Shown here: positions 1,771 through 62,075 of the stretch, one piece after another
Numbering within the stretch: the first letter of the stretch is position 1
How the letters are laid out: every line of letters begins with the position of its first letter
Assembly (NCBI RefSeq): GCF_002113885.1
Contig: NW_018408889.1
Coordinates: 416,383-480,382, forward strand
Source of the DNA: Mizuhopecten yessoensis
Lineage: Eukaryota
Direction: 5' to 3'
DNA: 64,000 nucleotides
Position numbers and translations under genes: made by a program
Notes under the pieces: generated by a model
Told to the model about the DNA's origin: nothing
What the model saw: only the letters and a program-made list of their open reading frames with translations
The model's database searches: none

Positions 1771-1886
1771 TTTGGACATTTTCACCACCGCATCAGAAGT
1801 CAACCGATTTCTGTTTTACCAAATATGATCTACCGGTATTCATGACTTGTACACCGCAGAGTCGTAAACTGTAGTTTCTGTTCCAG

Positions 1887-1938
1887 GAACCCCATGCAGC
1901 TCTGGAAGCATGCTTATACAGCCAAGTTCCCACAGGAG
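1887..1938 (+). CDS. DYNC2LI1: Cytoplasmic dynein-2 light intermediate chain 1, internal exon (xNPMQLWKHAYTAKFPQE)
   Basis: ttccag acceptor and GAG|gtgagt donor; resembles the recalled vertebrate DYNC2LI1 segment SPMELWKKVYEKLFP; phase 0 join to the next exon. Confidence 0.88.
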
Positions 1939-3633
1939 GTGAGTTCCAAGAGTAAATGTTGTCATGTCTCTGGTTTTGAAAATATTCATTGCATGATAAA
2001 AAATACAAATCATTTCTGTACAAAGTTTTTTGAAAAAAGGATTAAAAACAGGCCAAATGGAGAAATACTTAAAATATGTATACTCATAACTTTGGTACAT
2101 GTATACATATATAGAGGTCACTTCAACTCATTCATTTGTCCATCAACAACTCTGTATGTCCATTAACACCTTTTCTGACCTTAACTTCTGTATTTAATTA
2201 TGAAACTTCATAGGTCATTGTTATGCAAACAGTTCAATGTCATTCAATATATTCTAAATGCCAAGCTTGTAACATGGGACAAGATGTCAAATATTAATTC
2301 TGATTGGACACAATTTCTTTTTGAAACTTAACATGTATTTGTATTATGAGGCGAATGGTCAAGGTTAATGCCATGACAGATGGTTAAAGATCCAATCATT
2401 ATAATGTGCTTGTGGAGCTAATAGCTTCAATGGAATAAAATGGATGTTGTGCACCTCTGAAAGGAGATGGGGGGGGGGGGGGGGATATGTAAGCGAGTCG
2501 TAATACATTTTGTTGATGTTTTTATTATCAAATTGTTTTTGTTTGATGGACAAACAAACCTTACGTATGTATAAATATACATTTCTCAACGTTTCAATTG
2601 TGTTACAATTGTTTATTGTTATTGTGGCTGCGCTGACAGTCGTCGGAGGTAGGTGTTTGTTTTTCGATTAAAAGTTGGTTGTTTGTAAAAGTGACGGCGG
2701 CGATTAGTACGGGTGATTAGTACCGAAAATCTGCTTGTTTCTTCAGTTTACATGTCATGTTTTATTGAACTGAATTTTTATCACCTGTGATGATTAGCTT
2801 ATGTATAATGTATAATTACAGCAACATGAAAAATTGTAGTTAAAATATTAGTATGTTAACATGAATATGTTTTCTGTAATGAGCATGTAGAAAATCTATT
2901 TAGGTAATCCAGAGCCTCATCAGGTATAAGTACAAATAGAGAACCTCAATTGTTTCTTTTCATTATAAATTATATACCAAACATAATATTTCATTATTAA
3001 TATTCATTTGGTCATTTGCATTTGTTCTCAGAAAGATTTATTTTGTCAGCTAATTGTTTTCCTTCAAATATACAAGAAAACACAAGTAAAAAATATATAT
3101 GATTTTGATCATTTGACATATATTTTTTTTTATCGTCATTCATGTACTTTATGTAAAACCAAGAATTTGAATATGGTTCCTTCCTATTATATTTATAGAT
3201 ATGCATGCCATCTAAGGAACGTTCTTCTACTATATTTCCCGTGATCTTTTGCATCTCTTTGATGTCTCTTTGATGTCATTATTTGTTGTGTCCTGTCTGC
3301 TATGTTGCAATTTAGATCTTGACCTATTTTAAGTCTGCAGGAAGAAAGATAAACAAAGACAATGATTTCTAGAGGGATAATTATAACTGAATGACAGTGA
3401 TGACTAAAAGGGACAGGATGATTTTATCTGAAATAATAATAACTAGAGTGACGATTGTTTCTGAATTGGCAATGATAAATAAATCAGCAATGCTTATCAG
3501 AGGAGCAATGCAGAGCAGTGGTTAAAAAGACATGCAAAGTTAATTATAACTGAAGACATACTGTATACGGTTTTACTATGTACTATAAGGTTTCGAGTCA
3601 TGACCTTGACATCTGGTGACTTTGTATTTGTAG

Positions 3634-3726
3634 GATGTGACCAATCCAGCGATGGTTGAAGACCCGGCTAAAGATCCCCAGTACAAGGAGGCTGCTATTG
3701 ACTCCCTAAGGTCTCAGAAGGACGAG
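3634..3726 (+). CDS. DYNC2LI1: DYNC2LI1 penultimate coding exon (DVTNPAMVEDPAKDPQYKEAAIDSLRSQKDE)
   Basis: tttgtag acceptor, GAG|gtaaga donor, 93 nt phase 0-0; DPAKDPQY..D.LR.QKD matches the DYNC2LI1 C-terminal motif [21 protein letters not shown]. Confidence 0.92.
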
Positions 3727-4372
3727 GTAAGAACTTCAGTGCTACACGCCAACGTTAACAGTCAAATTATCCATCATCATTGGGTTTGTCTGGCACAACA
3801 GTAAAGAAAATGATGCTTGTGGGACCACACAGCAAATGATGTCCCTCTTGTGCCTGTGGCCATGGGACCTAAACCAGCCAGGCCATCAAAGTGGGATTTC
3901 ACATTCTCCTGGAAGTGGAAAGCTTCAATAGTTTTCCCATTGGTTCGGGGGTATATTGACCAGGGTAGGAACATTCCTGAAGATTACGAAAAGACTTGAA
4001 TATATTTTAATTACTTTTACACTGTAGTTCGTGTTCAATAAATCTTTCTTCTAATATAATGGATGGGCTTTGCGTGTGAGTGACAGGGAAATGGGAAGGA
4101 TTGTCAGGATCTATTACTTCTATTGGGACTGGAAGACTGGAAAGAAAATATTATTTGTAACTACGGAGTACAGATCACGACAACTTGTACTGTGATATAC
4201 ACTCAATGAAGTCACATACACTACAAGACATTTTCTTACAATTGCTGTATTAAATACAGTGGTAAATCAGGTAGGGTAAAGACACAATGTTTGCATACAA
4301 TGTAAATAATGTATGATATACCATGATGTTTGTCTGTGTCAGTAGTTGTTTATTTCTGGGTTTTTTCAACAG

Positions 4373-4450
4373 GAGTTGGAACGGTACAGACGGATGTCGG
4401 AGAGAAAAGCGAAGAGCGAAAAGAAATATGGAGGAACCTTTGCATCATAG
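4373..4450 (+). CDS. DYNC2LI1: DYNC2LI1 last coding exon (ELERYRRMSERKAKSEKKYGGTFAS*)
   Basis: ttttcaacag acceptor; ELERYRR matches ELEQYKR; TAG at 4448-4450. Confidence 0.9.
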   Translation, partial: ELERYRRMSERKAKSEKKYGGTFAS

Positions 4451-5978: not shown

Positions 5979-6375
5979 TAGGCTGCAGCGATATTCATAC
6001 CTCAAGAAACGATACACATCGCAGTTCGATGCTTACGATACGAAACGTTTCCGATATAGATATCTGCTTTAAAGTTCTGCTTCATAATGATTGGGTCCAG
6101 GATTTTATTGAGTTTTGTCACAGACTTCAATAGTAAATACTATAGAAATACATTTTTGTATAATTTCTAGTACTTTTGGGTATGACTGCACACAGTGGAC
6201 CACATCTTTACTGAAGGGTTAAAATAATATAGGTAACCTTTTTAGAGTTTGATAAAAATTGATTGATCATTTGTAAAAGTACTGTTAGTGTACCACGATA
6301 CAGCAGACAAACAAAACAATTTGATACGATACACAAGAAAGTATCTCCGCAATAAAATATTTCGTTGCAGCCTTA
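5979..6375. mobile_element. hAT-like MITE
   Basis: Termini taggctgcagcga / tcgttgcagcctta; cgata-rich subterminal motifs; TSD degenerate. Confidence 0.6.
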
Positions 6376-14599: not shown

Positions 14600-15330
14600 G
14601 CTAGATATAGAACTCTATTCTTAAACTACGCCGTACGTAGCCTAATATCACGGTAAAATTTTAGGTTCTCTTTCGTATTTGTTTAGTATGTTTCCTGTGC
14701 GCATGCGTAATCGGCATTTGTAACAGAGTACCTGTTGTAGGATATTCACAGGATCTTCCGCTTGCAGTGTTTTGATTCAATATTTCGTTTCTTTTAAATA
14801 TTCTCCTGGTTGGACATCGTTCGAGGTTAACTGGAACGTTTTGCAACGAACAGTTTTCTGCCTGGCATACTGTAACATCGGTATGGGCGTCATTTGGATA
14901 AATTTTCCGATGGTTCTGCATTGCTGAAACGCCATGATTCTGGACTCGGCTCTTTGAGAGTGCTGTTGATTAAGTGTGTGTGTCAGGAGAGATTCGGCGA
15001 CAGTACACATCGATACGTGAAACGTTTACAGGTGAGCATAATTCGTCAGGTACTCTACCGTTTCTGTGTTATGTCTGGAGATAGTCTGTGGCAGCGTAAA
15101 GGTATGGACCGGGATTAAAAATGGCTGCCACCGTGAATAATATTCATTCCACTTTCTTACCGAGCAGCAAGTAGATCTATGATTTGACAGTATAAGCAGG
15201 CGTTTTTGCTAGGTTGGTGTCTTATTCAGCGTGACAATCCTACCTTTGAACTAATCGCATGATAAATACGAGCCCAATGTTATGATTTTTTAAGAAGGAC
15301 TTATTTTCTGAACACCGACTTGACCGAGGT
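14600..15330 (+). promoter_or_regulatory. numb: Putative numb promoter and non-coding first exon(s)
   Basis: Locally CpG-rich; NRF1-type TGCGCATGCG at 14698-14707; YY1-type AAAATGGCTGCC at 15118-15129; donors CAG|gtgagc after 15031 and GAG|gtaaat after 15328; no other gene found between here and the numb coding exons. Confidence 0.6.
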
Positions 15331-16146
15331 AAATGCAAAACTGTCCTAGTTCTCAGGGCCTCTGAACCGTGACTGATATCACTTCATAGAACTTAGGAAT
15401 GTAGGGCGTGAATATGAACAGTACGCCTTGACCTCTTGCTTTGTTACCCTACCCTTCGGCCCGTACGTGACCTCTTATCTACATCGTTTGTGTACCCTAT
15501 AGATACACACATCACATCCAGGTATATCATGTAACAGAAGGGTTTAGATTATTATTAAGCTTGGTCAGGTAGCAGTGTGATTAAGCTTGGTCAGGTATAA
15601 CATTGTGATATCATCCTGTGAGCTATGTGCTTCACTACACAGGTGGAACGCTGAGGGAAGTGTGTTGGTGTAAACAAGTTATTTTTGAATGAATCCAACA
15701 AAACAACGGTTAGTGTTGTTTTATGTCATTTGATCATTTGTAACTACTTATGGTAAACTGGTTGAAAGTTGTCTATATGTATCAGTGTTTAGTTTGATTC
15801 GATTGGACATATAATTTACATCCAGTATATTTGGTTATAATATAAGTCTCAGATGTGATCACACATCTAGATGAGTCCAGGCTGAAAGACAATTAGTTAA
15901 TACCAGATTATTATACAGCAGATGGAGATCTTGCCCAGAGCTAAGGTTATTAATTAACTTGTGATGACAAGTTATACCTATAAGGATTATCCCTGTAAAT
16001 AGGCTAACATGTACAATAGGGTGAAGGTGTTGCCAAGCCTACAATTAAATGCATGCTCAAAACCTAAATTTGGCCTGAGATTGTATAGAGAATAAAAACA
16101 GATTTTGTTTATGATGATCAGTGTGCAGATTGGTTCATTTTAAAAA

Positions 16147-16548
16147 TAGAGCGGTCGCAATACACTTTACCCACGATTCGTTACCTATCTTGATATTTGT
16201 ACCACGATTTGATTATTTCGATTCGATACACCTTTATTTTAAAATATAAATAAAATGAGATATATATATATAAGCCGTCGATACACGGAAACCCACGGAG
16301 CATCACAAATTCTTATTTCCTTACAGCGTTACGCCATTTTGTTATGAATGCTTTGTGAAAATTGCATCCTCGCAACCGATTGGTTGAGGGTTTAGAGATC
16401 AGCCAATGAAAATGAACGTCTCACAGACGTTTCGACTGAAACGGCATACACTAATATTCAGATCGTGACTATCGAAAATCTGGAAAAATATATCGTGAAT
16501 CGAATCGAGCATGAAAAATCGCGGTACAAGTGAATGGTGACGCCTCCA
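16147..16548. mobile_element. hAT-like MITE
   Basis: Imperfect TIR tagagcggtc / gacgcctcca; 8-bp TSD tttaaaaa / tttaaaag; cgattcgata subterminal motifs. Confidence 0.7.
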
Positions 16549-17833
16549 TTTAAAAGGCAACAGTGTGTTGGTATTTAATAGATCAATGAAAATGGTGTCA
16601 TCCTATTAACTCTGATTTAGACATATACATACAATTTTTGACATATTTATAAATGTCACACATGGTATAATGTTCTCATTAACAGTCTATTTCTATTCAA
16701 TTTTTTTGAAACATGGAGTTACTTCTGTAAGAACAACTAAGCCATGATAACAATATATTGATCACGTGAACAGTTAAGAAAATAGATGTTGGTGTTATTT
16801 TGAAAAAAGTGTTTGATGGCTGGGAAATCCTTGAATAACATGTTTTTGTGAAATTACAATCCTGCATCAATCATTTAGTTTATAACAGGGTTGGTTATAA
16901 AAAAAGTCAGGTCTTGAATTCAGCCTTGACATTTAGCAGTTTCAGAAGGCTAACATGCTAACCATGAAGTTCGTAGAGTCAAATTAAATTTACACATGTT
17001 AGTTAGATATGTCTCAATTGTCCTTCCAGGAGTCGAAATAAATTCATTATGGAGAGTCCGATAGATATTCAGGGGCTTAATTAGTTACTACTTTCTGACA
17101 ACTTATATTAGTATGATGTCACCAATAATCTTTAAATGTTGACATCCTGAAGGGACAGCATATCTTCCCAATCTGAATTATTTCAATTCTGTGTGGCACA
17201 TATGAACATCTAAACATCATTTTATGAATAAATGTGAAGAGAAAAAAAAGCACATTGTATATTAACTTAATGAAGCCAGTGACAGTATTTCGTCTCACTG
17301 ATATTCTACATAGTTACATTGTGCTCTACAGATGTTTTTCCATTACAGAAAGCAATTAGCAGTTAGTCTCATATTGTTGACAAGTTTAGTGTCGTCAACA
17401 TTACCACTATGTAGCTAGGGACATGAACTATGTAGCTAGGGACATGAACACATGGCAATTTTGTATGACAATGCAAGTTTGGTTTGTATACTGCCATTCA
17501 AGAGTTTGTTTTTACCATCATGTTCTTCTATATATAATTATATATATGCGTGTTTGATTGGCGACAGATTAATCATGGCATACAATGAAAATGATTAGAT
17601 ATCCCAAATAACGACTTGTGTACAATAACTAGGAGTGATATTCATTATCCTGTTGATTACATACTAACACACAATGTATCAACATCAATGTTGACTGGTC
17701 ATGAAAATTCATTAAAACAAAGCTAGGCATAAGGCATGGGACTGACCAATGTAGTATTCCCATTGTAGATCTAGACCACTAAGTGGAAGCTTAAGAGTGA
17801 GGAACATAACAAATATTTATTGTGACAGTCTTG

Positions 17834-17925
17834 TTAACTCATTCACCCCTGCAGACACATTTTGAACTCTTCCAATTCAAAGGTTGGAATAGTTCATTAT
17901 GAAACTTCAGGGGTAAATAAGTTAA
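17834..17925 (+). mobile_element. ~90-bp TTAA-flanked MITE (copy 1 of 5)
   Basis: ttaactcattcacccctg...tcaggggtaaataagttaa. Confidence 0.88.
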
Positions 17926-19289
17926 TATGTAATATATCTAAACTCAGTTTGTTCAAGTGTGGTTAGCTTGAATTGACATTTGATCATGATAATTGACCAG
18001 GAACACTTACATATATATAATGCTTTATTTTCTAATTTCATGTAAGAACAAGCTGTTGTAAAATTTGGGTTGAAAAATCACTGCCAATATCTACTATGCA
18101 GATATCAACAGGTGAAAATTGATTGTATTTGTATAGAATAGTGATTTTTTCCTGTTTATCTTCCTGATAAATGAAATGGAATTTCCTGGAAAAGAGTGAA
18201 ATAATAAATGAGCTTTCCAAAATAAAAGACCGGAGACACATTTGTCAACAACAGAAATAGAAAATTAATAATATCTCAACAAAACAAAGAACAAAGGCAC
18301 AACGGAAAATATTTAAAAAAAAATCATAGAATTCAAGGGAAAATATTTTGAACTTAAATTCATAAAACTAGGATATATAATTATTTGGCGGTCATGTCAT
18401 GATCTGTAGTGCTGAATATTTCAGAATTTTTGATTATTTTTCTTTCCTGAAAAATCACTGAGAGGTTTCATATGTAATATCATTTCTAGATATTAAAAAA
18501 CCCACATATATTAACATTGTATAAGAAGCCTCTAAAGAGTATTTCTTCTGCTTAATAATTAGGGGACATGGTCGAATCACACATTGATATATATATATAT
18601 ATTCTAGCCCCATTCAAACACTTGGGATGTAATCTTTTTCATTTCTTATTCCTCTAAGCTTTCTTTTTGGCATCAATCTTTTCCATTTCTTATTCCTCTA
18701 CTCTGTCTTTTTGATGGTATAACCCTATTGTCCCCAATCGATACCTTGACTGTTGGGAGGATGTTAATTCACACACCAAACAAACATTTACTGGCCTCGT
18801 TACGGACAGCCACGTCTCAGAGGTGGCTTAAGCCGCTCTGTATCATCTGTTTATTACAGCATCGATATCTTGCAGTGCCTTTGCAAATCTGACACATGTC
18901 AAAAATGTTTATATGAAAAAATAACATGTGTGTTTGTTTGCGACTGATTTTACTCAAAAACATGATATTGATTTGAAAGTACGATAGTGTCTGATGTTGG
19001 AACAAATGCAATATATAACATTGCTTAGTTTTTACATCGTTTCTGATGCGAATGTAGCATTATGTATCATTGTTAGACTTATGTTTATAGATTCTGGTCT
19101 TACAGATCTAGAGTAAATACACTATGTAATAAATGAATAATTATAAGTGCAGGGTAAAATCGTGAGGTGCATGTAATTTCTGATAATAGTGATCATGATA
19201 ATATGAGGTTTTTGTGCCTGTTGTAAATAGACTTAATGTGGCATGTAAATATAATATGTATCATTGTGAGGCCTAGTAGTAAATATTGT

Positions 19290-19515
19290 ATGTTACATTG
19301 TGAGGTTTAGTAAAAGAATGAATAGCATTAGGGTATGTTACATTATGAAGTTTAATAGTAAAATAAATATGGTATGTATCATTTTGAGGTTTAGTAGTAG
19401 AGTAAATACTGTATGTAACATTGTGGGGTTTAGTAGTAGAGTAAATACGGTATGTTATATTGTGAGGTTAAGTAGTAGAGTAACTACGGTATGTAACATT
19501 GTTAGGTTTAGTAGT
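19290..19515. repeat. 39-bp minisatellite (~5-6 degenerate copies)
   Basis: Unit ttgtgaggtttagtagtagagtaaatactgtatgtaaca; produces the 13-aa periodic spurious ORF 19300-19566. Confidence 0.85.
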
Positions 19516-19756
19516 GTACTATCAGATGTGTTTGTGCTCTACATTTCTAACCTTTTGCGACATTAAGTAGATTTCAGTGTATTGTGGGAATGGCTTTGTG
19601 GGATCAATATCCTCATCCTGAAAAATCAATCATTGTCATGATATCCGTATCATTTTTGTTTTGTTTAATTGCAGTAACTGTACAAAAATAAAAATAAATA
19701 TATCTATATTATAACATTGAGTAATTCTTCATTAATAATAATGGTTCAGTTCTTCA

Positions 19757-19983
19757 GGGGGCTGCAGTGGCCAAGTGGTTTAGGCATCTGACATTCTGCT
19801 ATCACTAGCCCTCCACCACTGGGTTGCTGGTTCAAGACCTACAAATGGGGCAGTCACCAGGTACTGGCTGTAGGTCGGTGTTTTTTTCTCGGGAACTCCA
19901 GCTTTCCTCCACCACCAAAACTGTGCACATCCTTTAATGACCATATAGCTGTTAATGGGATGTAAAACACAAACAAAACCAAT
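19757..19983 (+). mobile_element. tRNA-derived SINE, family B (V-SINE-like)
   Basis: A box tggccaagtgg, B box ggttcaagacc, core ctccagctttcctccacca, aaac-repeat tail; TSD cagttcttca / caattcttcg; second copy at 32.6 kb. Confidence 0.88.
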
Positions 19984-22134
19984 CAATTCTTCGCCACTAC
20001 ACAATGTAATTCTTCATCACTACACAATGTAACTCTTCACCACTACATAATGTAATTCTTCACGACTACATAATGTAATTCTTCACCACTACACAATGTA
20101 ATTATTCACCACTACACAATGTTACTCTTCACCACTACAAAATGTAACTCTTCACCACTACACAATGTAACTCTTCACCCATACACAATGTAATTCTTCA
20201 CCACTACACAATGTAACTCTTTACCACTACATAATGTAATTCTTCAGCACTACATAATGTAATTCTTCACCACTACACAAAGTAATTCCTCACCACTACA
20301 CAATGTAATTCTTCACCACTACACAATGAAATTCTTCACCACTACACAATGTAATTCTTCACCACTACACAATGTAACTCTTTACCACTACACAAAGTAA
20401 TTCTTCACCACTACACAAGGTTACTCTTCACCACTACACAATGTTACTCTTCACCACTACAAAATGTAACTCTTCACCACTACACAATGTAACTCTTTAC
20501 CACTACATAATGTAATTCTTCACCACTACACAATGTAATTTTCATCACTACACAATGTAATTCTTCACCACTACACAATGAAATTCTTCACCACTACACA
20601 ATGTAATTCTTCACGACTACACAATGTAACTCTTCACCACTACACAATGTAACTCTTCACCAGTACACAATGTAACTCTTTACCACTACACAATGTTACT
20701 CTTCACCACTACACAATCTTACTCTTCACCACTACACAATGTAACTCTTCACCCATACACAATGTAATTCTTCACCACTACACAATGTAACTCTTTACCA
20801 CTACACAATGTTACTCTTCACCACTACACAAAGTAATTCTTCACCACTACACAAGGTTACTCTTCACCACTACACAATGTTACTCTTCACCACTACACAA
20901 TGTGACTCTTCACCACTACACAATGTAACTCTTCACCAGTACACAATGTAACTCTTTACCACTACACAATGTTACTCTTCACCACTACACAAAGTAATTC
21001 TTCACCACTACACAAGGTTACTCTTCACCACTACACAATGTTACTCTTCACCACTACACAAAGTAATTCTTCACCACTACACAATGTAATTCTTCACCAC
21101 TACACAATGAAATTCTTCACCACTACACAATGTAATTCTTCACCACTACACAAGGTAATTCTTCACCACTACACAATGTTACTCTTCACCACTACAAAAT
21201 GTAACTCTTCACCACTACACAATGTAACTCTTCACCCATACACAATGTAATTCTTCACCACTACACAAAGTAATTCTTCACCACTACACAATGTTACTCT
21301 TCACCACTACACAAAGTAATTCTTCACCACTACACAAGGTTACTCTTCACCACTACACAATGTTACTCTTCACCACTACACAAAGTAATTCTTCACCACT
21401 ACACAAGGTTACTCTTCACCACTACACAATGTTACTCTTCACCACTACAAAATGTAACTCTTCACCACTACACAATGTAACTCTTTATCACTACACAATG
21501 TAATTCTTCACCACTACACAAGGTAATTCTTCACCACTACACAATGTTACTCTTCACCACTACAAAATGTAACTCTTCACCACTACACAATGTAACTCTT
21601 CACCCATACACAATGTAATTCTTCACCACTACACAATGTTAGTCTTCACCACTACACAATGTAACTCTTCACCAGTACACAATGTAACTCTTTACCACTA
21701 CACAATGTAATTCTGCACCACTACACAATGTAACTCTTCACCACTACACAATGTTACTCTTTACCACTACACAAAGTAATTCTTCACCACTACACAAGGT
21801 TACTCTTCACCACTACACAATGTTACTCTTCACCACTACAAAATGTAACTCTTCACCACTACACAATGTAACTCTTCACCACTACCCAATGTAACTCTTT
21901 ACCACTACACAATGTAATTCTGCACCACTACACAATGTAACTCTTCACCACTACACAATGTAACTCTTCACCACTACACAATGTAATTTTCATCACTACA
22001 CAATGTAATTCTTCACCACTACACAATGTAATTCTTCACCACTACACAATGTAATTCTTCACCACTACACAATGTAATTCTTCACCACTACACCATGTAA
22101 CTCTTCACCATGCCACTACACAATGTAATTCTTC
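19984..22134. repeat. 23-bp satellite, ~93 copies
   Basis: Unit accactacacaatgtaattcttc with variants; the ORFs inside have 23-aa (3-unit) periodicity. Confidence 0.98.
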
Positions 22135-23098
22135 TGTAATATAATTCATTGTCATTTAGCAAGCTGCAAATGCAATGAATTCATTTAATAAATAACTATT
22201 TGATACTTCTAAGAATTCAATTATGAACATCTGGTTTTAATTAGTAATGAAAGCCTAAAGTGTAACTGTTTGGCTGTATGAGTGGTTGGTGTATTACTAT
22301 ATTATCTTTCACATTATTACACACTGCATGTATGTATGTATGTATGACTCAGCCTCCAGTGTGCCTGTATACGTACTGTATAGCTTGATAATGATTTAAT
22401 TGGTTTGTAGTGATAACTTGGTGTGGAGACCGACCCATGCCCCCAAGTACACAAGTATATATACGGGTACTGTTTTACCGGTAGATGATGTCAGAGAGGA
22501 CACCTGGGTTATATGTTCGTCATTATATTAGCACTGACATTTCCTGCAAAAAAAAGGAGGAAGTAGAGAGTAAAAAATGTTTTAATGGCCTGCACAAGTA
22601 AAAACATTTTCATAAATGTTTTAAACGAGTCTATAACATAATACTGCAGACCAAATATATGGTGTAACCAATATCCTATTTTACCAAAGAATATTACATA
22701 TACTATGGACAGAAGATTTAGGGAGAATCAAACATATGTGGTGTGTAACCTATATAAAGCGACCAAGTTTTATTACAGGAGTTATTGGTTTTAATACTGG
22801 TATAGCTACATGTATACAATTATGTGACAGATTTAATTTTGTATGCCGATAATTTTGGCTTCTACTTTATTAATATCTGACATCTGCATGAAATACTCTG
22901 AAAGTGCATATTTCATATCATTAATTGCATGATTGCAATAGCATACATGTATGTCAATATTATTACAACTATTGACTTGAGCAAGTCTATATACCATATT
23001 AGACTTGCTCAAGTCCATCTATAGACAAAAAAACCCAATCATACCGACTGAAAGTCAGTCTAACATAAATATGTATGGTACGTACTGGTAGTTTCAGG

Positions 23099-23530
23099 TA
23101 GTGTTGTCCCGATGATCGATTATAATCGATGTCTAATCGGAAAGGCAACCGATTTCCGACAATCGATTATGAGATGTCAACATCGACGATTGTTTTCAAA
23201 ACCGAAAGTGTGAGTTCTACTTTCATTTTCACTAAGAGAGAATGGGAGTTCTAAGTCATTTTACTCTTAACTATAACTTCTTACCAATCATGCTAATTAA
23301 TTAATTGCAAAAAAAAAAGGGTTAGGGTTTGCTTCAAAGTTGAAATTTCATTAGTAGTATTAATAAAAAGGAAAAGCCATATGAATGCCATTGTTAAAAA
23401 AAAAGGAACTGGTTTTTTTAAGGATTTTGTAATGGTAGGCTAACCAATTAATGATCGAATATCGATCGGTTGACACTTACCGATTATATCCGATCATCGA
23501 TGTTGAAATCTCAACTGATTCCCAACACTA
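23099..23530. mobile_element. hAT-superfamily MITE with perfect 8-bp TSD
   Basis: gtttcagg-[tagtgttg...caacacta]-gtttcagg; atcgat/cgatt subterminal repeats. Confidence 0.92.
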
Positions 23531-24263
23531 GTTTCAGGAGTGTGGAGTATCTTGTGAATGACATGTTTAGCTATGTGTCAGAGTTACTTGCCGGTGAATG
23601 ATCAACAGTAATACCAGTACATGTACTTTGACTGTTTTACTATGGATAGGAGTGTTTTCATTGTCTCACTCTCACAATGACAGCTGTGTATACATATGTT
23701 AATGTGTTTGTCTGGACATAGACAGAGTGTCAGACAGGGACATGTCTTAAGAGAGATATGCCTTTGGTCTGTCATCCATGATGTACCACCTTCCAGCAAG
23801 TTTAATGTTTTGGAGGACAACAAAATACGCATAGGACACACCTTACCTACAGATGTGATAAATTTTCCCCTTTGGTTTTGAATTGGAATAATTTAAAATC
23901 GCTTGGTGTTTCTATATATAACAGCTGTTGCTGATTTCATTCAAAATTTATTAGAATATAACATACTTTGTATATAATAACATGTATTATTGTTCCTGTG
24001 CGTCAGTACAGGTATGTCACTCATTGTACAGGTAAGAAAGGCTGTATGTATCGGTGGGTACAGTGTAATATATACCACACAGAATTAGTCATCCTGTTGA
24101 TCCATATTTCAGCGAGTGGGCTGACGTCCCATGCATTATATACATTCTACAGCATTATAGATCTAAACGATAGAGGGATCAGTGCTTCGCTGGTTCTCAA
24201 GGAAGTAGCCGGTGTCAGAAATTCTCGCACAACTCACAGTGTTATACATACAAATTCTCAAAC

Positions 24264-24305
24264 ATGGGACTAAATAAGACCACGAATCAGCCGAAATCAG
24301 GACGA
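24264..24305 (+). CDS. numb: Candidate alternative numb N-terminal coding segment MGLNKTTNQPKSGR (exon probably 24113-24305)
   Basis: Strong Kozak aaacATGG; consensus gtaagt donor in phase 0, in frame with ATC ACC ATG of exon 30313; acceptor atttcag at 24112; M-G-x-x-x-T myristoylation pattern. Confidence 0.65.
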
Positions 24306-25626
24306 GTAAGTTAGATATTATTTATTTACTATACCAACGTAGCTATATTTAGATTATGGAAACATGTAAATTGTTCTAGGTACAAACATAAAAGTACATG
24401 TATCACACTGTGGGTACCAGCTATAGGTCATAACATGTGTACATGCAGTACAGGGCGTCCTGATCATAGGGCTCGATCACAGGCGTGGTAGTTCTGCTTA
24501 TGTATTTTGAGGAATATGTGTCATAGACTCATAGTGTCTGTTGTTAAAACTAAAGTGAAATTTCATAAATGTAAATTTGAATGAGTCAGAACCTGAATTC
24601 ATGCATAAATTATAATTTTAATACTTTGTAATTAAAAAAGATCATGATCTGAATGATCATCAAAAATTGTGTGACTACCATGCACATGTGCATTTTCATG
24701 TATGATGTGGACTGTTTTTTATATATCATACTGTTGTAGTTATAAATAGTACCATTACACATGTACTTAAAATAGAATGTACATGTAAGTTGAATAATGG
24801 CTAAATATAAATACATGTAGTTTCTGTTTTTAATTTGACAGTCAATTATGTATACACATGCCTATATAGGCATGGTATTCAGTTTTGTAATGTAATGGTT
24901 ATAGACACTTTATTGGAGACAGATCTGCCTTTATTAAATATTGGATTATCATGTGAGTGTGCAGCTATTTATAAAAAAAACATGTAAATTTAAGTATGCA
25001 TGATGCAAAACCATTCATCCCAGATATGGATACTAAAGATTGTGCATATATATATATATACCAATCAACTTCCATGTCAGTTCATGTCTGTCAAAGGGTT
25101 GCAATTTTTTTTCAAGGGTAATTTGTATCCTGTTTACTTCTATATACAAGGTAACTACATAATGTATCATGGTGATGAACAGCTTGTATCCCATGAGGAT
25201 GAAATCAAGATTACATCAACAAATTTAAACAGCCTATAAGCTAGCTGTTCTACAAACCGTACCCTGGGCTAGATCAAAGGGTTACCGAGATGGTGCTATG
25301 ATATTATTAGGTAATTATAGATTTTGTTACTGGGAATATTGATAACATTTGAAACACGACACTTTTTAAATTTTTTTTGTCAGCTTTTCATCCATGGTTT
25401 ATTTATCGGGAGAGAATCCAGAGGAGATTTCAGCCATCGCATGTGTATATCTGTAAAATTATAAAATTGTGAAAGTAATACAGTGTACATCATTGTTATG
25501 CTTCAATTAATGATTTTCAGCAAAAATAAAAAAATGTTTTCAAATAGTAAACATACAGTAACAACATTGGTCATGGACGAAAAATTATCAATTAAAAATA
25601 TATTAAACTTGATTTACAGTTATGAA

Positions 25627-25840
25627 ACGAGTTATTTCAACTTATACTTAACACTCTTGTTGGCCCAGATATTAGCCTGCTGTGGGTTTAATGTGGGAGG
25701 ATGTTAGAGTCGCCCAGAGAAAACCCACAGGTGACCCATGCCAGGGCCCATATACCTTTTCATGTACGATCACGGAATCGAACCCCGGCCGCCTTGGTGA
25801 AAGGCAAGTGTGTTATCCTCTATATGCCACCCACGTTACC
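25627..25840 (-). mobile_element. SINE family A copy
   Basis: aatgtgggagg...cccagagaaaacccac...gaatcgaaccccggccgccttggtgaaaggc. Confidence 0.85.
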
Positions 25841-26694
25841 AACCAATTATAGATTGATGGGTATATATGTACCATAATGTAGGTAAAATACATATGTATA
25901 CAGTGTATATATTATATATACAGTACTGTACTGAATTGTGAAGCTTGTCCTCTATTTCAACCAGATATCAATATACATTGTACATGCCAGGTGAAAAGGC
26001 CCCTTGTGGGCCAGGTTTGACCCATAACTATGTGCCATGTGTGCTTTTTAGAACTAGTATGGTCTGTGTATATCAATTATTCAAGTCCTTGAAAGCCTCA
26101 TGCAATAATGAATATACGTACTTCAGTACATAGTTATTCATTTTGGATATAGTTTATAATCTACACTGCCCAATGTTTCAAATTGTTATAAAATTGATAG
26201 TTTTACATTCGGAGAACATGATATGCTGATCATGAAGGTGACCCATTAGATCTGGTTTATATACATAATCAATATGTTAATTTCTGTTTGAGTTTCCTAG
26301 ATTTTAACACTAGACTATTTCCATCTAATGGCCATCAGTGGGATTAATTACTTCACTCTATATAGCAAGGATAATTGTGTTTAATATCCACTGGTGTCAT
26401 GTTCAGTCAACACAAGGGTCAACATAGGATGGTATGTTACACAAAAACACTTGCTACAGAATGAGATCAGGTTGTAATGCAAGTGATATGCATTGTTATT
26501 AGGACTGATGGGAGTGTAGCTTTGGATTTTATTGGAACAACTGAAATGATTGACATTCAATTAGCTAGCCTTTAGATCTGTAGAGGTACAACAGGGAAAA
26601 GAGTTGTCATCGCTTTGGCTAGCATATAGGATCAACTTGAATTATTATTATTGTCATATTGGTTAGCCTAATTGCAACTGCATTTGCAGTTATC

Positions 26695-27660
26695 TGGACA
26701 TTGACTAGCCTGTACAAACAACTGGAATTTCATTATTATGACATTGGCTCGCCCGTACAAACAACTGGAATTTTCATTATTGTGACATTGGCTAGCCTGT
26801 ACAAACAACTGGAATTATATCATTATTGTGACGTTGGCTAGCCCATACAAACAACTGGAAATTTCATTATTGTGACGTTGGCTGGACTGTAAGAACAACT
26901 GGAATTATCATTATTGTGACATTGGCTAGCCTGTACAAACAACTGGAATTATCATTATTGTGACGTTGGCTAGCCCGTACAAACAACTGGAATTATATCA
27001 TTATTGTGACATTGGCTAGCCTGTACAAACAACTGGAATTTTCATTATTGTGACGTTGGCTAGCCTGTACAAACAACTGGAATTTTCATTATTGTGACAT
27101 TGGCTGGACTGTACAAACAACTGGAATTATGATTTTGACATTGGCTTGCCTGCAGGAACAACTGGAATTATCATAATTGTGATATTGTCTATCTACAACT
27201 AAAAAGACCAACCGGAATAACTGTAAATGTGACATCGGATTGGCTAGCCTAAACGTATGTGTACAACTGGAATTGTCATAATTGTGACATTGTCTATCTA
27301 CAAGACCAACCGGAATAACTGTACCGTTAAATGTGACATTGGCTAGCCAAAACGTATGTGTACAACTGGAATTATCGTGATTGTGACATTGTCCATCTAC
27401 AAGACCAACCGGAATAACTGTAAATGTGACATTGGCTAGCCAAAACGTATGTGTACAACTGGAATTATCGTGATTGTGACATTGTCTATCTACAAGACCA
27501 ACCCGAATAACTGTAAATGTTATATTGGCTAGCCAAAACGTATGTGTACAACTGGAATTATCATGATTGTGACATTGTCCATCTACAAGACCAACCCGAA
27601 TAACTGTAAATGTTATATTGGATTGGCTAGCCTAAACGTATGTGAACAGCTGGAATTATT
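26695..27660. repeat. Compound minisatellite: ~44-46-bp monomers, then 93-bp dimeric units
   Basis: gacattggctagcctgtacaaacaactggaattatcattattgt to ~27170; then ggctagcc at 27341, 27434 and 27527 (93-bp spacing). Confidence 0.93.
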
Positions 27661-27989
27661 TCAACTGTGAAACAGGATAGTGAATATATCTAAATTTGAA
27701 CATCTGACCTCTACCTATAGTCAGATGATCACAAACACTTCGTGTCTGGTCACCTACCATTGACCCAGTCCAATTGTGCTACATTAATTAACTCCTGTGT
27801 TTGTAAGGAACATCTCTAGATCTGAAGACACTTCATTTGTCATTTCTTTCAGCCTCACATATATAGGTCACAATGGCAACCAACCAGAACACCTATCCAA
27901 ATATGCATGCATATTCCAATTGAAGGTGTGTAGCGCTAGCCTAACAAACCAGACCATGCATACTTGCCAACTCTCTCTATTTTTGATGA

Positions 27990-28200
27990 GGGAGACTTCA
28001 GATCTTAGACCCTAAAATTCAGGATTTCAAGTTCCACTGAATTTGCTAAACTATTTCTATTTTCTGAGCTCTGATGATTGAATCTGAGAAAACAGCTTAA
28101 AAGATGCCATTTAAAAGTGTTATTTTCCCCTAGGGTGTATTTGAACCTGTGTGATCTCCCCCATTGAAATTTTAAAAAGGTTGTCATGCATGGACCATGA
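27990..28200 (+). repeat. Dispersed repeat fragment (second copy ~59025-59240)
   Basis: Shared cagatct...aaactatt.ctattttct.ag.tctgatga...tgccatttaaaagtgttatttt.ccctagggt. Confidence 0.75.
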
Positions 28201-29804
28201 GCATGTAGACCAGAGTTTTAGATTTTCATTGTATAAAACTACATACAGATGTGCCGGGAATTAATCTAATCCAATTAAAAGGAAAACATGGTCAAATTTA
28301 CTATATCACATGGATTAGAACCCATGCACTATTATTAGTGAAAGCTTTACCAATGCAAATGAGCTGATCATGACTGATTAATGATTGATAGAGCACAGTT
28401 CAATCCCGAGATCATTAATTGACAACAATAATTAAATTATATATTTAAAATACAAGATGTTCATTAAATTGGATGTTGTATTTAAATTTGATAATGTGTA
28501 AAATATGTAATTCAATCATTTCCATGTGCTCCAAAAGGTAATATTGACAGGAATTCATTTCCTGTAGAATTACCACATAGTATTGTACCTTTATTTGTTA
28601 GCACTATCTATATTGCTTGTAAGGCATACATGTATATACACAAGAATTTGTGAGCTGTTTCAATGTAATTGGTTTTTTTTCTCTCCAACTGAAGTAATTT
28701 AGTTTTGTATTTTGGCAGAAATGTTCTACTGGTGAAAACTCTCTCTCAAATAATCGAATCGGGGAAAGTCGTTTCCGCAATGTTGGACGTGTATTGAACA
28801 TTGGTTGGGAAGATGTGGGCTTCATGCATGCATGTATAAAAATACTTCACTCTTTGTTTATACATATATATGTATATATGTACAAAGAATGTGATTACAC
28901 AATTCAGATTGAGGCTTAACATTTCCAGATCAGAGTCTTTTGAAGACTTGGTTGTGTCAGACACTGACTATTGGTGAGCATGCATGCTGACTGGGTGCTT
29001 TAGGTGCTCTGTGTGTAGCATCACAACTGTCTGATGGTCTTTATGTGTACTTTAGGTTCAATTATATTACATTTGGACTTGGCTAGAATGCAGAATTAGG
29101 GTTCCGTCCATGTATATCAGCAACATATGTATATCAGCAACATATGTATATAATGTTATAGAAATCACAGATTGGTGGATCTGTGCATGTAGTCATGGGC
29201 AGTCATGACCATAGTAGGAGTTTGGCCAAGCTGGACATATGGTGCACATGGTATACGTAGTTTGTTAGGAAAATATTGGTCTTTTTACAAATGGACCGGT
29301 ATATATACGTAGAATATGAAGTACAGGGGGTACATATTGTCTGTCTTTTGTTACTTTGATCTGTAGCCAAAGGTGTTACACAACAAAACATGTGCATGTA
29401 AGGTCTGTTGTTTATCATTTAGGCCAGACATGTATATATTGTTTTAACAGTAGAACTTACATGTAACCCTATGTACATGCATGTGTAATCAATATGTACA
29501 TGAAGGCGAAGCACAGGCCAAATCAGTTTCACTGGTGTTACGTATACTTCAGTTATAGAAAGACATTACTGGAGTTAGGGAAAAGAAAATTCATGAACTT
29601 TAGATTTTCTCACATGCATCTTCGATAATTCTTTCCTGAAGTTTCCTATGCTTGAAATTGAATGAAGATGGAGGATTTTCTCAAATAAGCTTGAAAGATG
29701 ATAATGTTATAGCCATTACATTTTTCTATCCATTGAACCAATTTGAGTATGATGATATTAGCTGTCTTCAAATGCTTACATACATACACCATCAAAAAAC
29801 ATAT

Positions 29805-30025
29805 CTGTATACTGGGAAATTTTCGCTGCAGTTTTGTTTTCGCCTTTTTCTCCTTCTGTAATGACGGCGAATTTACCATTTCATGAAACATTAATAAACA
29901 GCATAATATTCATAGTAATTAAATGTGAAGGGCGTAAATTAAAGAACACTGGGTGATCATGCATATGGCTTATTCTGAAGAAGGGTGAAAGTTTGACTGG
30001 TGAAAATTTCCCGGTACATTGTATA
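29805..30025. mobile_element. Tc1/mariner-like MITE
   Basis: tactgggaaattttcgc ... ggtgaaaatttcccggta inverted termini. Confidence 0.6.
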
Positions 30026-30318
30026 TATATACAGCTAGCATGCGCAGTAGCCATTGAAAACAAAAATTTAGTTTGATTCTCCTTGTCAGTATATATATCA
30101 TCATTTCTTATACTTAACTGTAACAAATATTAAGTAAAAAAAAAGAACAAGACCCAGAGCCAGCAGACATGGGTTATCTTGGTTGAAGAAGTCGATGACT
30201 CACTGTAATATAATATATACATACCGATATACCTAATATGCAGAAAGGTGTATAAACAGTTTATGAAAGTTCTTATCGTGTCATTATAATTCTCTGTTGT
30301 ACTATTTGGCAGATCACC

Positions 30319-30447
30319 ATGGAGACTATAAAGAGGAGACTCAGTTTTCGGAAAAAGAAACCACACGTTCCAGAATGTTCAAAACCTCACCAATGGCAGG
30401 AAGATGAGAAGAAGGTGCGCGACGGCACATGCAGTTTCCAAGTCAGG
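30319..30447 (+). CDS. numb: Protein numb, exon with canonical start ([43 protein letters not shown]); exon begins at 30313
   Basis: Numb signature SFR.KK..VPE.S.PHQWQ.DE..VR.G.CSF.V; ggcag acceptor, AGG|gtaagt donor. Confidence 0.97.
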
Positions 30448-33998: not shown

Positions 33999-34073
33999 TA
34001 CCTGGGTTGCCTGGAGGTGTTCGAGTCACGAGGGATGCAAGTATGCGAAGAGGCTGTGAAAACGTTAAAAGCT
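33999..34073 (+). CDS. numb: numb PTB exon ([25 protein letters not shown])
   Basis: Polypyrimidine tract + ag, GCT|gtaagt, 75 nt phase 0-0; YLG..EV.ESRGM..CE.AVK.LKA Numb motif. Confidence 0.97.
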
Positions 34074-42839: not shown

Positions 42840-42917
42840 CAATGCCGAGGGAAGTACCAGCGAGCTATCCTCTATGTTTCTGGTGACGCCCTCAGAGTGG
42901 TGGATGAGATTAGTAAG
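42840..42917 (+). CDS. numb: numb PTB exon (QCRGKYQRAILYVSGDALRVVDEISK)
   Basis: tttttgcag acceptor, AAG|gtatgt, 78 nt; matches A.L.VS.D.LRVVDE..K. Confidence 0.96.
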
Positions 42918-50840: not shown

Positions 50841-52794
50841 TCGAGACCTTTCTCAAGCAATTTTTCAGAAAATGTTGAAGCAGATTTATAACTAACAATG
50901 ACAATAGCGATATTAAACATCAGTCACTTGTTAGGACTGAATCTTAATTATCGGTGGTCGTAGGCTAATGACTTCTGCACTTTCCATGACTAAATCTATA
51001 GAAAACACAAACACATTCACAGAAAGTCGGAACAAATCACGACAGCATGCAGTGTCACAGTAGGATTGTCAGCAGTGCGAGCGGAAAGTCTATGTTGTTC
51101 CCCATTGGAATCAATAGTGGCTGGTTGTAGTATATTCAGGAAGACGCTGGTAAATAACTTTCGTATAGTCTGGCCACGTCCACAATGACATATATCACAA
51201 GTGCATACATATCTCACGGAAGAATAATACCCAGAAAATTGTTGACTGTCGAAAAGGTCAATTGTGATGGAGTTATTATTGAGCCGTTGGCTAAAAGATT
51301 GTATATATTTGTTGATAACACATCAATTTACTGCTAACTAGATGCTGTGTTAGACCCTCATATCTCAAACAGCAATCACAAGGGGAGCAAAAAAGCTGCG
51401 TCAAACACCTGCTGTATACATGATAATAGTTTCCTGTATGTGTTAAATAACACACAGTTAGGGATGTGCTGAACCAGCAGTTTTGAGGCTGGTAGGTACA
51501 TATGTATTACTTCAATTTTCATTGTCGCAAAAAAAATCCCTCCAGGTTTTCTAAAATAGGTGAAAATTACCCAATGTTCAAAAGTAGGTGAAAATTACCC
51601 AATGTTCAAAAGTAGGTGAAAATCACCCCATGTAAATATAAAATTGTAGGTGCTGATGTTTGATTGCTTGTAAGTTGAGTGAGCATGGTGCCATCTCTTA
51701 GGTAGACAAGTTATGACAGTGCTATATCTGAAGTCTGTTAAGGAATCCCATACCACTTCCCAAAACTGTAACTAAGTATTGAAAAATGATTTTTCCAGCA
51801 TGACTGTAGCGTTTATTAATCATTTCTTAAAAGAAAACCATACCTTGCGGGACTTTTATGAGAAATAATAAGGATGAAATAAACAATATATGAATCAACA
51901 ACAGTGTTATGAGAATAAAAATTCAACAGAGTAAGGTCGGGATTCAAACCCTGGACCTCAGATTGTTATACTGTAATGAGCTGTACCTGGTCAACGGAAG
52001 TGTCATGGTCCAACTGTGCTACAGTTATATCCAAACTGAAGTTAATTAGGGGAGGTTACTGTATATAGGAAAAACCGCAGCGCTGTGGGACAGGGGGCCT
52101 TAAATCTGTATCAGCACAGATATCAATGATACAATATCAGGTTTATACAAATAACACAAAGTCCAAGTAAGATCAAGATTGTATTGTTCGTTTCATTTGT
52201 TTCAAATACAAAAGCTACTATATATATATTTACTAAAAAAGTTATAATCTTTGGGTGTAAAAACATTGTTTCAGTGATTGTTACCATAGGCTTAGCAAAA
52301 CCACAAAACTGATGACCAAGTGGGTTGTGTAAAACAGCAAAATGCTTTTAAAATTGTTGTTATATGTATATTTAATGGTTGTTATTACATCAAGCTACAT
52401 GTTAACTATATAGACACATGGTAGTCAAATACAAAATTTTAACAATGAGCGAGCCTGAATTTATTTCATGAAAAACTGTTGCTGAATGTGTCCTACGGTA
52501 GTTAGTATGTACGTGCAAATTAAAATAATGGAAATGATCTTTTGTAATATTTTGCCTTGTACATTTTTTTTAATTCCATTATACATGTATTAGAAATATA
52601 TGAATTTTTGAGCAATATGAATTTTGAAACGAGCTTGATCTTGTTTGTAAACAGAAAAAATCAAAAAATCCTGGTAAGTACTTAATGTGTATATACAACC
52701 CCTTCCACCCCTACCCTAATTTTTCTAGCTGTAAGTTTTGAAACAATAAGATTAGTTATACAGTAAACTTAACCATGATTTCTATTTCTTTCAG

Positions 52795-52935
52795 AGCATG
52801 ATTGTGGATCAGACGATAGAAAAAGTTTCGTTCTGTGCACCTGATCGTAATCATGAAAAAGGTTTCGCATACATTTGTCGTGACGGCACCACCAGACGAT
52901 GGATGTGCCACGGTTTTCTGGCCGTGAAAGAATCC
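52795..52935 (+). CDS. numb: numb PTB exon ([47 protein letters not shown])
   Basis: Near-invariant Numb motif [17 protein letters not shown]...[16 protein letters not shown]; tttcag acceptor, TCC|gtaagt donor; 141 nt. Confidence 0.99.
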
Positions 52936-54754
52936 GTAAGTGTCAGTAGTATTTTTGTTCATTTTTAAGCTTTCGTCAATTGCACTCTCTGTCAACGTGT
53001 GGACCCCAGTTCTGTGACCAGGCTGCCGAAGCTGAAGATAATCTTTAGAAATGATAATGAAAGAAAACATGTGGCACGGTAATGAAATTTAATGCATATT
53101 TTGGTGTGAAAATGATTCAATTTAATTAACTTGGTTTTGTGTGGGCGTAGACGAACTATAATAGGATAAAGAGTTAGGAACTAGGAGGATTACTTTAGCA
53201 GTAATTACAATTGGTTACGACTGGGAGACAAATGTTACTGTCTTAAATTTAGTTATAGACATCCAATTTTAGGGGGAAGTCATCGTTTGTTTTTTCAGTT
53301 TTCTAGAAATCACAAACCTTTGACATTTGAAATTATGTTGAATGAGAAAATGTAGAAGAAATTGTTTATTGAAAAGTAAATGTTTTGCAATGTTTTGCCG
53401 ATTTTTTGTACAAGATTAATGGTTGCTGAAAAGAAGTTTTATTGACACTCGCACACATTGCAAAAAATCAGCAGACGACGGCCTGGTCACAACCTAGTAA
53501 GGGGAACAGACATTGACATCGTCTTCTTTGTGTTGTTAATTCAGCTTTTTAGAACTTTTCTTTTAAAATACCGCACCCAATCAATGCCTAAGATCATGAT
53601 TTTGCTTAATGTTGGATGTTTTCTCCGGCATTTGGAGACAGGTCTGTGATATATATTTTTTTGCATCAGAATCTCTCTTTGTGCATGGTGTGGAACTGAT
53701 GTGTATTTACTATTAAGAAATGCAAACTGACTGGTCTTGAAAATGACATTGTTTAATTGTTTAACAACCTGTGTCTTATGATTTTGTTTGTAACATTTCC
53801 TATATATATATATGTGTGTCAAAAAACTATCCTAGCGAATGTGCAGGCTCAAATGTCCAAACGGCCATGAGAATGGACAAGTAACGCCTTATTAACTCGT
53901 CATGTTTTAGAGAGAAAAAATGTAAACCAATGTTATATTTTTGAAATCCAGTAGATCATATATAGGATCAATGTTGTATAGGTAAGGTCTGAAAGTAAAT
54001 TTAACATCATACAGCTTGTGTGGTAACAAAATAAATCATTTTCATCTGTCCTAAATTTGATGCAGTACAAGTGTCTATTGGTGTACCTTTAGAATCTTTC
54101 AATATACGTGTACTCTATATCTCCTTCCCCTGTGCCTGACACTTCATATGTAAATCAATCAAGATCAAAAGTTACCAAAACTTTTTCTTCGTATAAATCA
54201 GAAAGGAGAGGATTAAATATGGTCAATGTAAGAAAACTTTGTCCTTTTAAAACAGGGTCCTATACATGTCTGTATCTTGTGTGGTGTATAAGAAACAGTA
54301 GATGTAATCAGAATATGAGGGATATTTACTACCCTAGTAGTGTAAACACTCGGGGAACAATGTCCTGATTTAAATCAATACCTAAAGCTACCAGTCTGGG
54401 CAAAGTGTAGGCAAAGAGTGGTACAATATCTTCCCAACAACACAACAATGCTAACTTATAGATCCCCAAATCCTTCACACCTTAGTATAGAGAGAGCTTC
54501 CAATGAAAATATTTAACCAATTTCAGTTATCATAAGAGTCAACAGAAGTTTAAAGAACCTTCAGATAGGTGGATCTAGTGGATCTAGATATTGTCTGGAA
54601 TGTCAAGACTAACTTTGACTTTGTAGGTACTGATGTCATGCGTAATGTTTAGGGTTTAATTAAGTTGTAAGAACTTGTGCCCAATCCTTTTTGTCATTTT
54701 CAAGGCAATAAAAATATGTTTAAAAGACAAAAAAAAAAATGTTTGGTATTTACT

Positions 54755-61879: not shown

Positions 61880-62075
61880 GGGGAGCGACTGAGCCATGCA
61901 GTGGGCTGTGCCTTTGCGATCTGTCTGGAGAGGAAGCAGAAACGAGACAAAGAGGTGACGACAAGTGTGACAGTGACCTACAGTCAGGACCGCACCAGCT
62001 TCACGAGAATGGGCTCCTTCCGTCAGACCTCGCTTACAGAGAGGATCACAGACCCGCAGAGTGCCATTATAGCAG
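61880..62075 (+). CDS. numb: numb exon, end of PTB (GERLSHAVGCAFAICLERKQKRDKEVTTSVTVTYSQDRTSFTRMGSFRQTSLTERITDPQSAIIA)
   Basis: GERLSHAVGCAFA.CLERKQKR and F.R.GSFR motifs; ctgtag acceptor; CAG|gtgagg donor, phase 1. Confidence 0.98.

Follow-up and report, generated by a model that had tools for sequence, protein, structure and literature searches.

Numb is inherited by one daughter cell or the other according to its position at the cell cortex, and it is anchored by its N-terminal region in flies versus an insert in the PTB domain in vertebrates. The stretch of the Yesso scallop (Mizuhopecten yessoensis) genome analysed here, 64,000 nt in length and hereafter called the window, contains a numb-like gene, and within the long first intron of that gene lies a short exon whose peptide begins with Met-Gly. 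This locus raises the question of whether a mollusc makes a form of Numb with an N-terminal lipid anchor, and of how such a long form would be chosen over the short one that starts at the conserved downstream Met.

The numb-like gene and its leader exon

The gene in the window is the Yesso scallop numb-like gene, the exons of which match the RefSeq protein XP_021378148.1 (protein numb-like isoform X4) at 98-100% in tblastn (Table 1). This protein has the N-terminal PTB/PID followed by NumbF that marks Numb adaptors (Pfam PID 2.6e-26, NumbF 1.1e-29), and exon 2 alone matches Numb chains in the PDB and leads to the Numb family in a HMMER search. Named relatives were gathered by a word search with one full-length HMMER match and then from a cluster listing. 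Exon 2 encodes Ile-Thr, the conserved Met (30319, caccATGg), a polybasic patch and the beginning of the PTB domain region.

Table 1. Positions of the features discussed, numbered from the first letter of the window.
Feature	Position	Strand	Basis and remarks
TATA-like element, tatataa	23971..23977	+	~30 nt before 24004, the start of the run X4 contig
Alternative 5' exon (exon 1b) of numb-like	24004..24305	+	3' end exact, 5' end approximate
Conserved 5' leader block, three scallop genera	24007..24125	+	Alignments; corresponds to L001:2745-2870 and L002:6140-6250
Upstream ORF, 75 codons	24046..24273	+	ORF listing; other frame, weak ATG context, overlaps leader ATG
Leader coding sequence, ATG + 13 codons, MGLNKTTNQPKSGR	24264..24305	+	Sequence; 100% match to XP_021378148.1 residues 1-14
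Splice donor gtaagt, phase 0	24306..24311	+	Run contig loose ends at 24305; kept in Argopecten and Ylistrum
Intron from exon 1b to exon 2, 6007 nt	24306..30312	+	Tandem repeats inside at 26697-27659
Exon 2 of numb-like	30313..30447	+	100% match to XP_021378148.1 residues 15-59; PDB Numb matches
Coding exon, isoform X4 residues 60-84	33999..34073	+	tblastn 100%
Coding exon, isoform X4 residues 85-110	42840..42917	+	tblastn 100%
Coding exon, isoform X4 residues 110-157	52792..52935	+	tblastn 98%
Coding exon, isoform X4 residues 158-222	61880..62074	+	tblastn 100%

The leader ATG (24264-24266) lies in the strong start context aaacATGg, with A at -3 and G at +4, and opens 14 codons, the last of which ends at 24305; this start, its open codons and a gtaagt donor in phase 0 were all located where the original prediction, made from the letters alone, had placed them. 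On the far side of the intron, cag at 30312 is followed at 30313 by ATCACCATGG, reading ATC ACC ATG GAG, and the frame is continuous with that of the leader. Splicing from 24305 to 30313 would extend the protein by 16 residues, MGLNKTTNQPKSGR-IT, before the conserved Numb start, and the M-G start just ahead of a polybasic patch that had been foreseen is exactly what the leader and exon 2 give. Exon 1b was found once in the 988-Mb assembly and is thus single-copy, and the 15-kb interval 15400-30312 contains only four GTRAGT donors, two of them with an in-frame ATG.

The exon had been described as hidden. The N-terminus of XP_021378148.1 is identical to the predicted leader peptide, so the exon is not hidden, since the same peptide is already annotated in a public RefSeq model; isoform X5 of the same gene begins METIKRR, at the downstream Met. 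The leader-bearing RefSeq models (XP_021378148.1, XP_033736084.1 from Pecten maximus and XP_069117862.1 from Argopecten irradians) are automatic and make no statement on myristoylation, and the literature that we searched is silent on the scallop Numb leader.

Several other features of the locus were observed. Compared with isoform X4, isoform X5 carries within the PTB domain an insert of 14 residues, basic and hydrophobic (VSRFFKARHRNRRS), the source of which is a 36-nt micro-exon (56089-56124, forward strand) together with a donor 6 nt further on (52936-52941); the insert is reminiscent of the one in the PTB domain of vertebrates (exon 3), which controls membrane binding, though its place in the domain differs. 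Upstream of numb and on the same strand, window positions 1880-4450 hold the final exons of a gene for a cytoplasmic dynein 2 light intermediate chain 1-like protein. GenBank entry OWF38561.1 ('Protein numb', 886 aa) fuses this dynein gene to Numb exon 2, a probable mis-join, on account of which the 90% cluster takes in dynein proteins as well. The numb intron sequence flanking the leader exon is rich in repeats, with a 2.1-kb minisatellite at 19988-22110 (23-nt unit, 92 copies, strong skew of C over G) and, at 26697-27659, a 1-kb array built of 44-93-nt units. At 23461-23533, all four of the sequencing runs described below yielded many short high-depth contigs, flanked on either side by unlike sequence, which probably come from a dispersed repeat transcribed elsewhere.

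Transcript evidence for the splice junction

Words of the exon were detected in 19 runs from nine studies; two of these runs are recorded as RNA and most of the others are guessed to be RNA. Assembled contigs of four runs (X4, X7, X3 and X11) were aligned on window positions 23100-25500, and the junction was read from their loose ends. Runs X4 (recorded as RNA), X7 and X3, which belong to three different studies, each contained one contig that matches the window up to 24305 and then continues as ATCACCATGGAGACTATAAAGAGGAGACTC, identical to window 30313-30342, with which exon 2 opens. Because contigs of three independent studies stop at 24305 and then read ATCACCATGGAGACTATAAAGAGGAGACTC, the exon and its junction with exon 2 are real. 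The in-frame joining to ATC ACC ATG at 30313 that the sequence had suggested is therefore found in transcripts, and the proposed check for reads spliced from 24305 to 30313 came out positive in all three of these runs. Depth in run X4 was 74 for the exon contig, 8.6 for an unspliced contig across the donor and 0-8.6 in the flanks.

The overhang beyond 24305 was exactly 30 letters in each of the three runs, which we take to be the word length of the assembler minus one. Overhangs of this length are expected of a branch in the assembly graph, so exon 2 is probably also joined from another upstream sequence in the same X4, X7 and X3 libraries. Run X11 showed even coverage of the whole stretch, as from DNA or unspliced RNA, and is uninformative on splicing because this coverage is genome-colinear throughout. 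A word search using residues 1-120 of isoform X4 returned no scallop transcript fragments with the leader.

Conservation of the leader among scallops

The leader recurs in other scallop genera. Pecten maximus isoform X2 starts with MGLNKNMNQPKSGRVT and Argopecten irradians isoforms X1, X2 and X4 with MGLNKNLNQPKSGRVT, and the Ylistrum balloti genome contains an intact exon (L002:6392, 3.6 kb ahead of exon 2) that reads MGLNKNMNQPKSGR and then GTAAGT; the two Ylistrum RefSeq isoforms examined begin at the downstream Met, without the leader. DNA was compared among Mizuhopecten, Argopecten (L001) and Ylistrum (L002), with Pecten represented by its protein model. The leader frame stays intact, with no indel, in all four genera, and its ATG retains the A at -3 and the G at +4 in all three genomes.

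Most differences among the three DNA sequences are silent (pS 0.41-0.56, pN 0.03-0.10, pN/pS 0.07-0.25 over the leader codons), as at Pro10, which is encoded by CCG, CCC and CCA, and all of the replacements fall on residues 6 (T/N/N) and 7 (T/L/M). The silent excess gave a Fisher p of ~0.004 in two of the three pairs, which are non-independent and cover 13 codons only. Because the codon changes are mostly silent and both exon and frame are conserved, the leader is probably translated, a view that we hold with some confidence.

The predicted myristoylation signal

Substrates of N-myristoyltransferase (NMT) carry Gly directly after the initiator Met, and the scallop leader provides this as ATG GGA at 24264-24269, with Gly2 invariant in all four scallop genera. 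PROSITE describes the myristoylation site as PS00008, G-{EDRKHPFYW}-x(2)-[STAGCN]-{P}. The Mizuhopecten leader matches this low-specificity pattern as a regular expression, the GLNKNM and GLNKNL of the other three genera fit it when read by eye, and a leader of this kind turned up by chance in 0.7% of 300 shuffles. Residue 6 is Thr in Mizuhopecten and Asn in Pecten, Argopecten and Ylistrum. The favoured NMT site has Ser or Thr at this place (G1-x-x-x-S/T5; PMC5492501). Asn at residue 6, the transferase's second most important place, is tolerated, not favoured. Thus, of the NMT consensus M-G-L-N-K-T that had been read in the leader, Gly2 stands in four genera and Thr6 in Mizuhopecten only, and the conserved MG-x-x-x-S/T leader anticipated in relatives proved to be an MG leader in Pecten, Argopecten and Ylistrum that has Asn in place of the Ser/Thr. 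Myristoylation is plausible, given the unvarying Gly2 and the agreement of all four leaders with the PROSITE rule, and we rate the leader's modification in vivo, judged from its sequence, a little below an even chance.

If the leader is modified in this way, the initiator Met would be removed and Gly2 then N-myristoylated, and the lipid, together with the adjacent polybasic, Ser-containing patch, would tie the long isoform to the membrane more tightly than the METIKRR short isoform is held. This is the layout of the myristoyl-electrostatic switch of MARCKS and Src, in which an N-terminal Gly is followed within 20 residues by a Ser-containing basic cluster; unlike in those proteins, lipidation, phosphorylation and membrane release in scallop Numb are all read from sequence layout. 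Work by McLaughlin and Aderem in 1995 is reportedly the source for proteins with such a switch. The Ser of the scallop basic patch aligns with one in the basic stretch at the N-terminus of Numb from flies and vertebrates, reportedly an aPKC target (Smith et al. 2007).

Numb leaders in arthropods and other molluscs

The original prediction pointed to a longer fly Numb isoform with an N-terminal myristoylation signal, and a long and a short form were indeed found, beginning MGNSSSH... and MDRLRR..., in line with the long (zygotic) and short isoforms described in Drosophila (PMC11889595). In a second account (PMC12683805), the N-terminal myristoylation site and basic region of fly Numb are said to bind the membrane. 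Arthropods in general (flies, beetles, bugs, lice, crustaceans and spiders) have MG[NAT]xxS... leaders alongside short MDRLRR forms. Arthropod and scallop Numb share a long M-G form and a short form from the conserved Met, M-x-[KR]-L-[KR]-R-S-F. The arthropod leader spans 18-85 residues with the motif MGxxxS..HEPL[ED]R, whereas that of scallops has 16 residues and no sequence likeness to it.

None of the Numb proteins listed from other molluscs starts with M-G: oysters begin MTAG- or MKAG- and venerid clams MP-, mussels have no such leader, and cephalopods have other leaders. The intron before the conserved Met lies two codons upstream of it in the scallop, as against 14 codons in Drosophila tropicalis and 10 codons in Aplysia, and these differing positions rule out a leader intron shared with fly or Aplysia. 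Because sequence and intron position differ and other molluscs have no MG start, a shared origin with the arthropod leader is unlikely, and the scallop leader looks lineage-specific.

Gastropods have a leader of their own, MERxGSKRFxRYRxI, which is conserved from Patella to Aplysia and for that reason is probably functional. Like the scallop leader, it is a short conserved extension before the same conserved Met and is started in a separate upstream exon; unlike it, the gastropod leader has no Gly2, and the Aplysia intron lies elsewhere, with exon 2 beginning 10 codons before the Met. By this comparison the two leaders are probably unrelated. The gastropod-like SKRF motif was absent from window positions 3800-30312. 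In Aplysia californica the first coding exon contains only 14 coding nt (MERKG, L003:1001-1014), and the next exon lies at 6012-6170.

These gastropods bear on an alternative to the lipid anchor, in which the scallop leader is translated and conserved and is not myristoylated, and instead contributes extra basic residues (K5, K11 and R14) that lengthen the membrane-binding patch, alters protein stability or offers a motif for partner binding. That a Numb leader can be retained in molluscs with no lipid signal is seen in gastropods, which keep a basic-rich leader that lacks MG. In scallops the peptide is under purifying selection, yet the key transferase residue after Gly2 varies (T/N/N/N). Set against this variation are the invariance of Gly2 across four genera, the PROSITE rule that all four leaders still pass and the fly precedent, reportedly studied by Benetka et al. 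in 2008, which favours a lipid anchor. We consider a conserved leader without lipid unlikely, though with a real claim to attention.

Upstream reading frames and the conserved 5' block

The myristoylated isoform also depends on use of the leader ATG, ahead of which transcripts of exon 1b carry other start codons. The upstream ORF listed in Table 1 ends 9 nt past the leader ATG and could divert ribosomes to the downstream Met, and further upstream ATGs occur at 24014 and 24131, with more if transcripts begin further upstream (three to six in total). Argopecten has upstream ATGs too, mostly at other positions, including a 49-codon upstream ORF that starts nearby in the same frame as the 75-codon ORF of Mizuhopecten, the frame being restored by indels of -2 and +8 nt between the two. 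The most conserved DNA of exon 1b is the untranslated block at 24007-24125, which exceeds the coding leader in conservation and contains the acceptor-like GATCCATATTTCAG (24099-24112), identical in three genera. This block may act as an acceptor in other tissues, as an initiator-like element (TCAGT) or as a UTR signal. Position 24113 is a C>T polymorphism in runs X4, X11 and X3, and it is the T that gives TCAGT.

If the upstream ATGs and the overlapping ORF blocked the start at 24264, the exon would serve as a 5' UTR, protein would be made from the Met at 30319, and the promoter would alter the timing or amount of Numb and not its N-terminus. The number of upstream ATGs and their presence in Argopecten as well, the perfect context of the Met at 30319 and the better conservation of the untranslated block than of the leader all fit such a role. 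It is nevertheless improbable, given that the leader frame has remained unbroken and indel-free across four genera, that silent changes in it far exceed replacements, that the strong start context of its ATG is conserved and that the upstream ATGs mostly have weak contexts and no conserved positions. We thus retain the reading in which the leader is translated into a long isoform.

The 5' edge of exon 1b

The exon had been proposed as a cassette at 24113-24311, included or skipped, with atttcag ending at 24112 as its acceptor. This motif exists; the edge at 24113 is unsupported, as the junction contigs are colinear with the genome past it, back to 24004 in run X4, 23986 in run X3 and 23783 in run X7 (a reach of 109-330 nt), and the contigs of these three runs list no joint or loose end at 24113. 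In run X4, depth drops from 74 to 0 5' of 24004. Since the contigs pass 24112 unbroken, the likeliest identity of exon 1b is an alternative first exon whose promoter lies in the long first intron near 24,000; we infer the 5' end of the transcript from contig ends, which cannot demonstrate a start. The tatataa element ahead of 24004 is a possible core promoter of this exon, and its aligned place reads TATAAAA in Ylistrum and holds no such element in Argopecten.

Cassette status was rejected on the alignment of contigs of the four runs, in three of which the donor at 24305 was used and no splice was seen at 24112. A cassette at 24113-24305, entered through the acceptor at 24112 from an exon near 15,000, is very improbable in view of these unbroken contigs and of the loss of depth beyond 24004 in run X4, even though GATCCATATTTCAG followed directly by YGAGTGGGC is identical in three scallop genera and only one short upstream ORF (24131) would then precede the leader ATG. 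Perfect conservation of the acceptor-like motif leaves room for cassette use in other tissues. In the runs analysed, the choice looks like one between alternative promoters, not between inclusion and skipping.

Two further observations concern the sequence upstream. Runs X7 and X11 carry a 15-nt insertion (ATATATGCGTGTATA) behind 23973, within the TATA-like region. A block at window 15321-15540 is 81% identical between Mizuhopecten and Argopecten (L001:36-257) and starts at a donor-like site (15328) named in the original prediction; its distance to the leader exon is 2.7 kb in Argopecten and 8.9 kb in Mizuhopecten yessoensis.

Implications for Numb in scallops

The reading that we favour is that a promoter-driven alternative first exon gives a conserved, myristoylated M-G isoform of Numb, and we hold it, as a whole, to stand evenly between right and wrong. 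The long or the short form would be chosen by promoter use, possibly tuned by the upstream ORFs, and not by exon skipping. The practical value of the finding is modest, as the isoform is already in RefSeq; what is new is the selective conservation of the leader, its probable origin from a separate promoter and the putative lipid anchor.

We suggest, tentatively, that a lipid-anchored isoform of Numb arose within the scallops (Pectinidae), separately from that of arthropods, when the first intron acquired a promoter and a 14-codon M-G exon. A conserved M-G leader peculiar to one mollusc lineage would make a second and independently gained example of a lipid-type anchor on Numb. If this suggestion is true, the conserved 5' block and the upstream ORFs would gate the amount of the long form, the locus would offer a simple test system for asymmetric division in spiralians, and a myristoylated long form paired with a short form would be a recurrent solution for targeting Numb to the membrane in protostomes.
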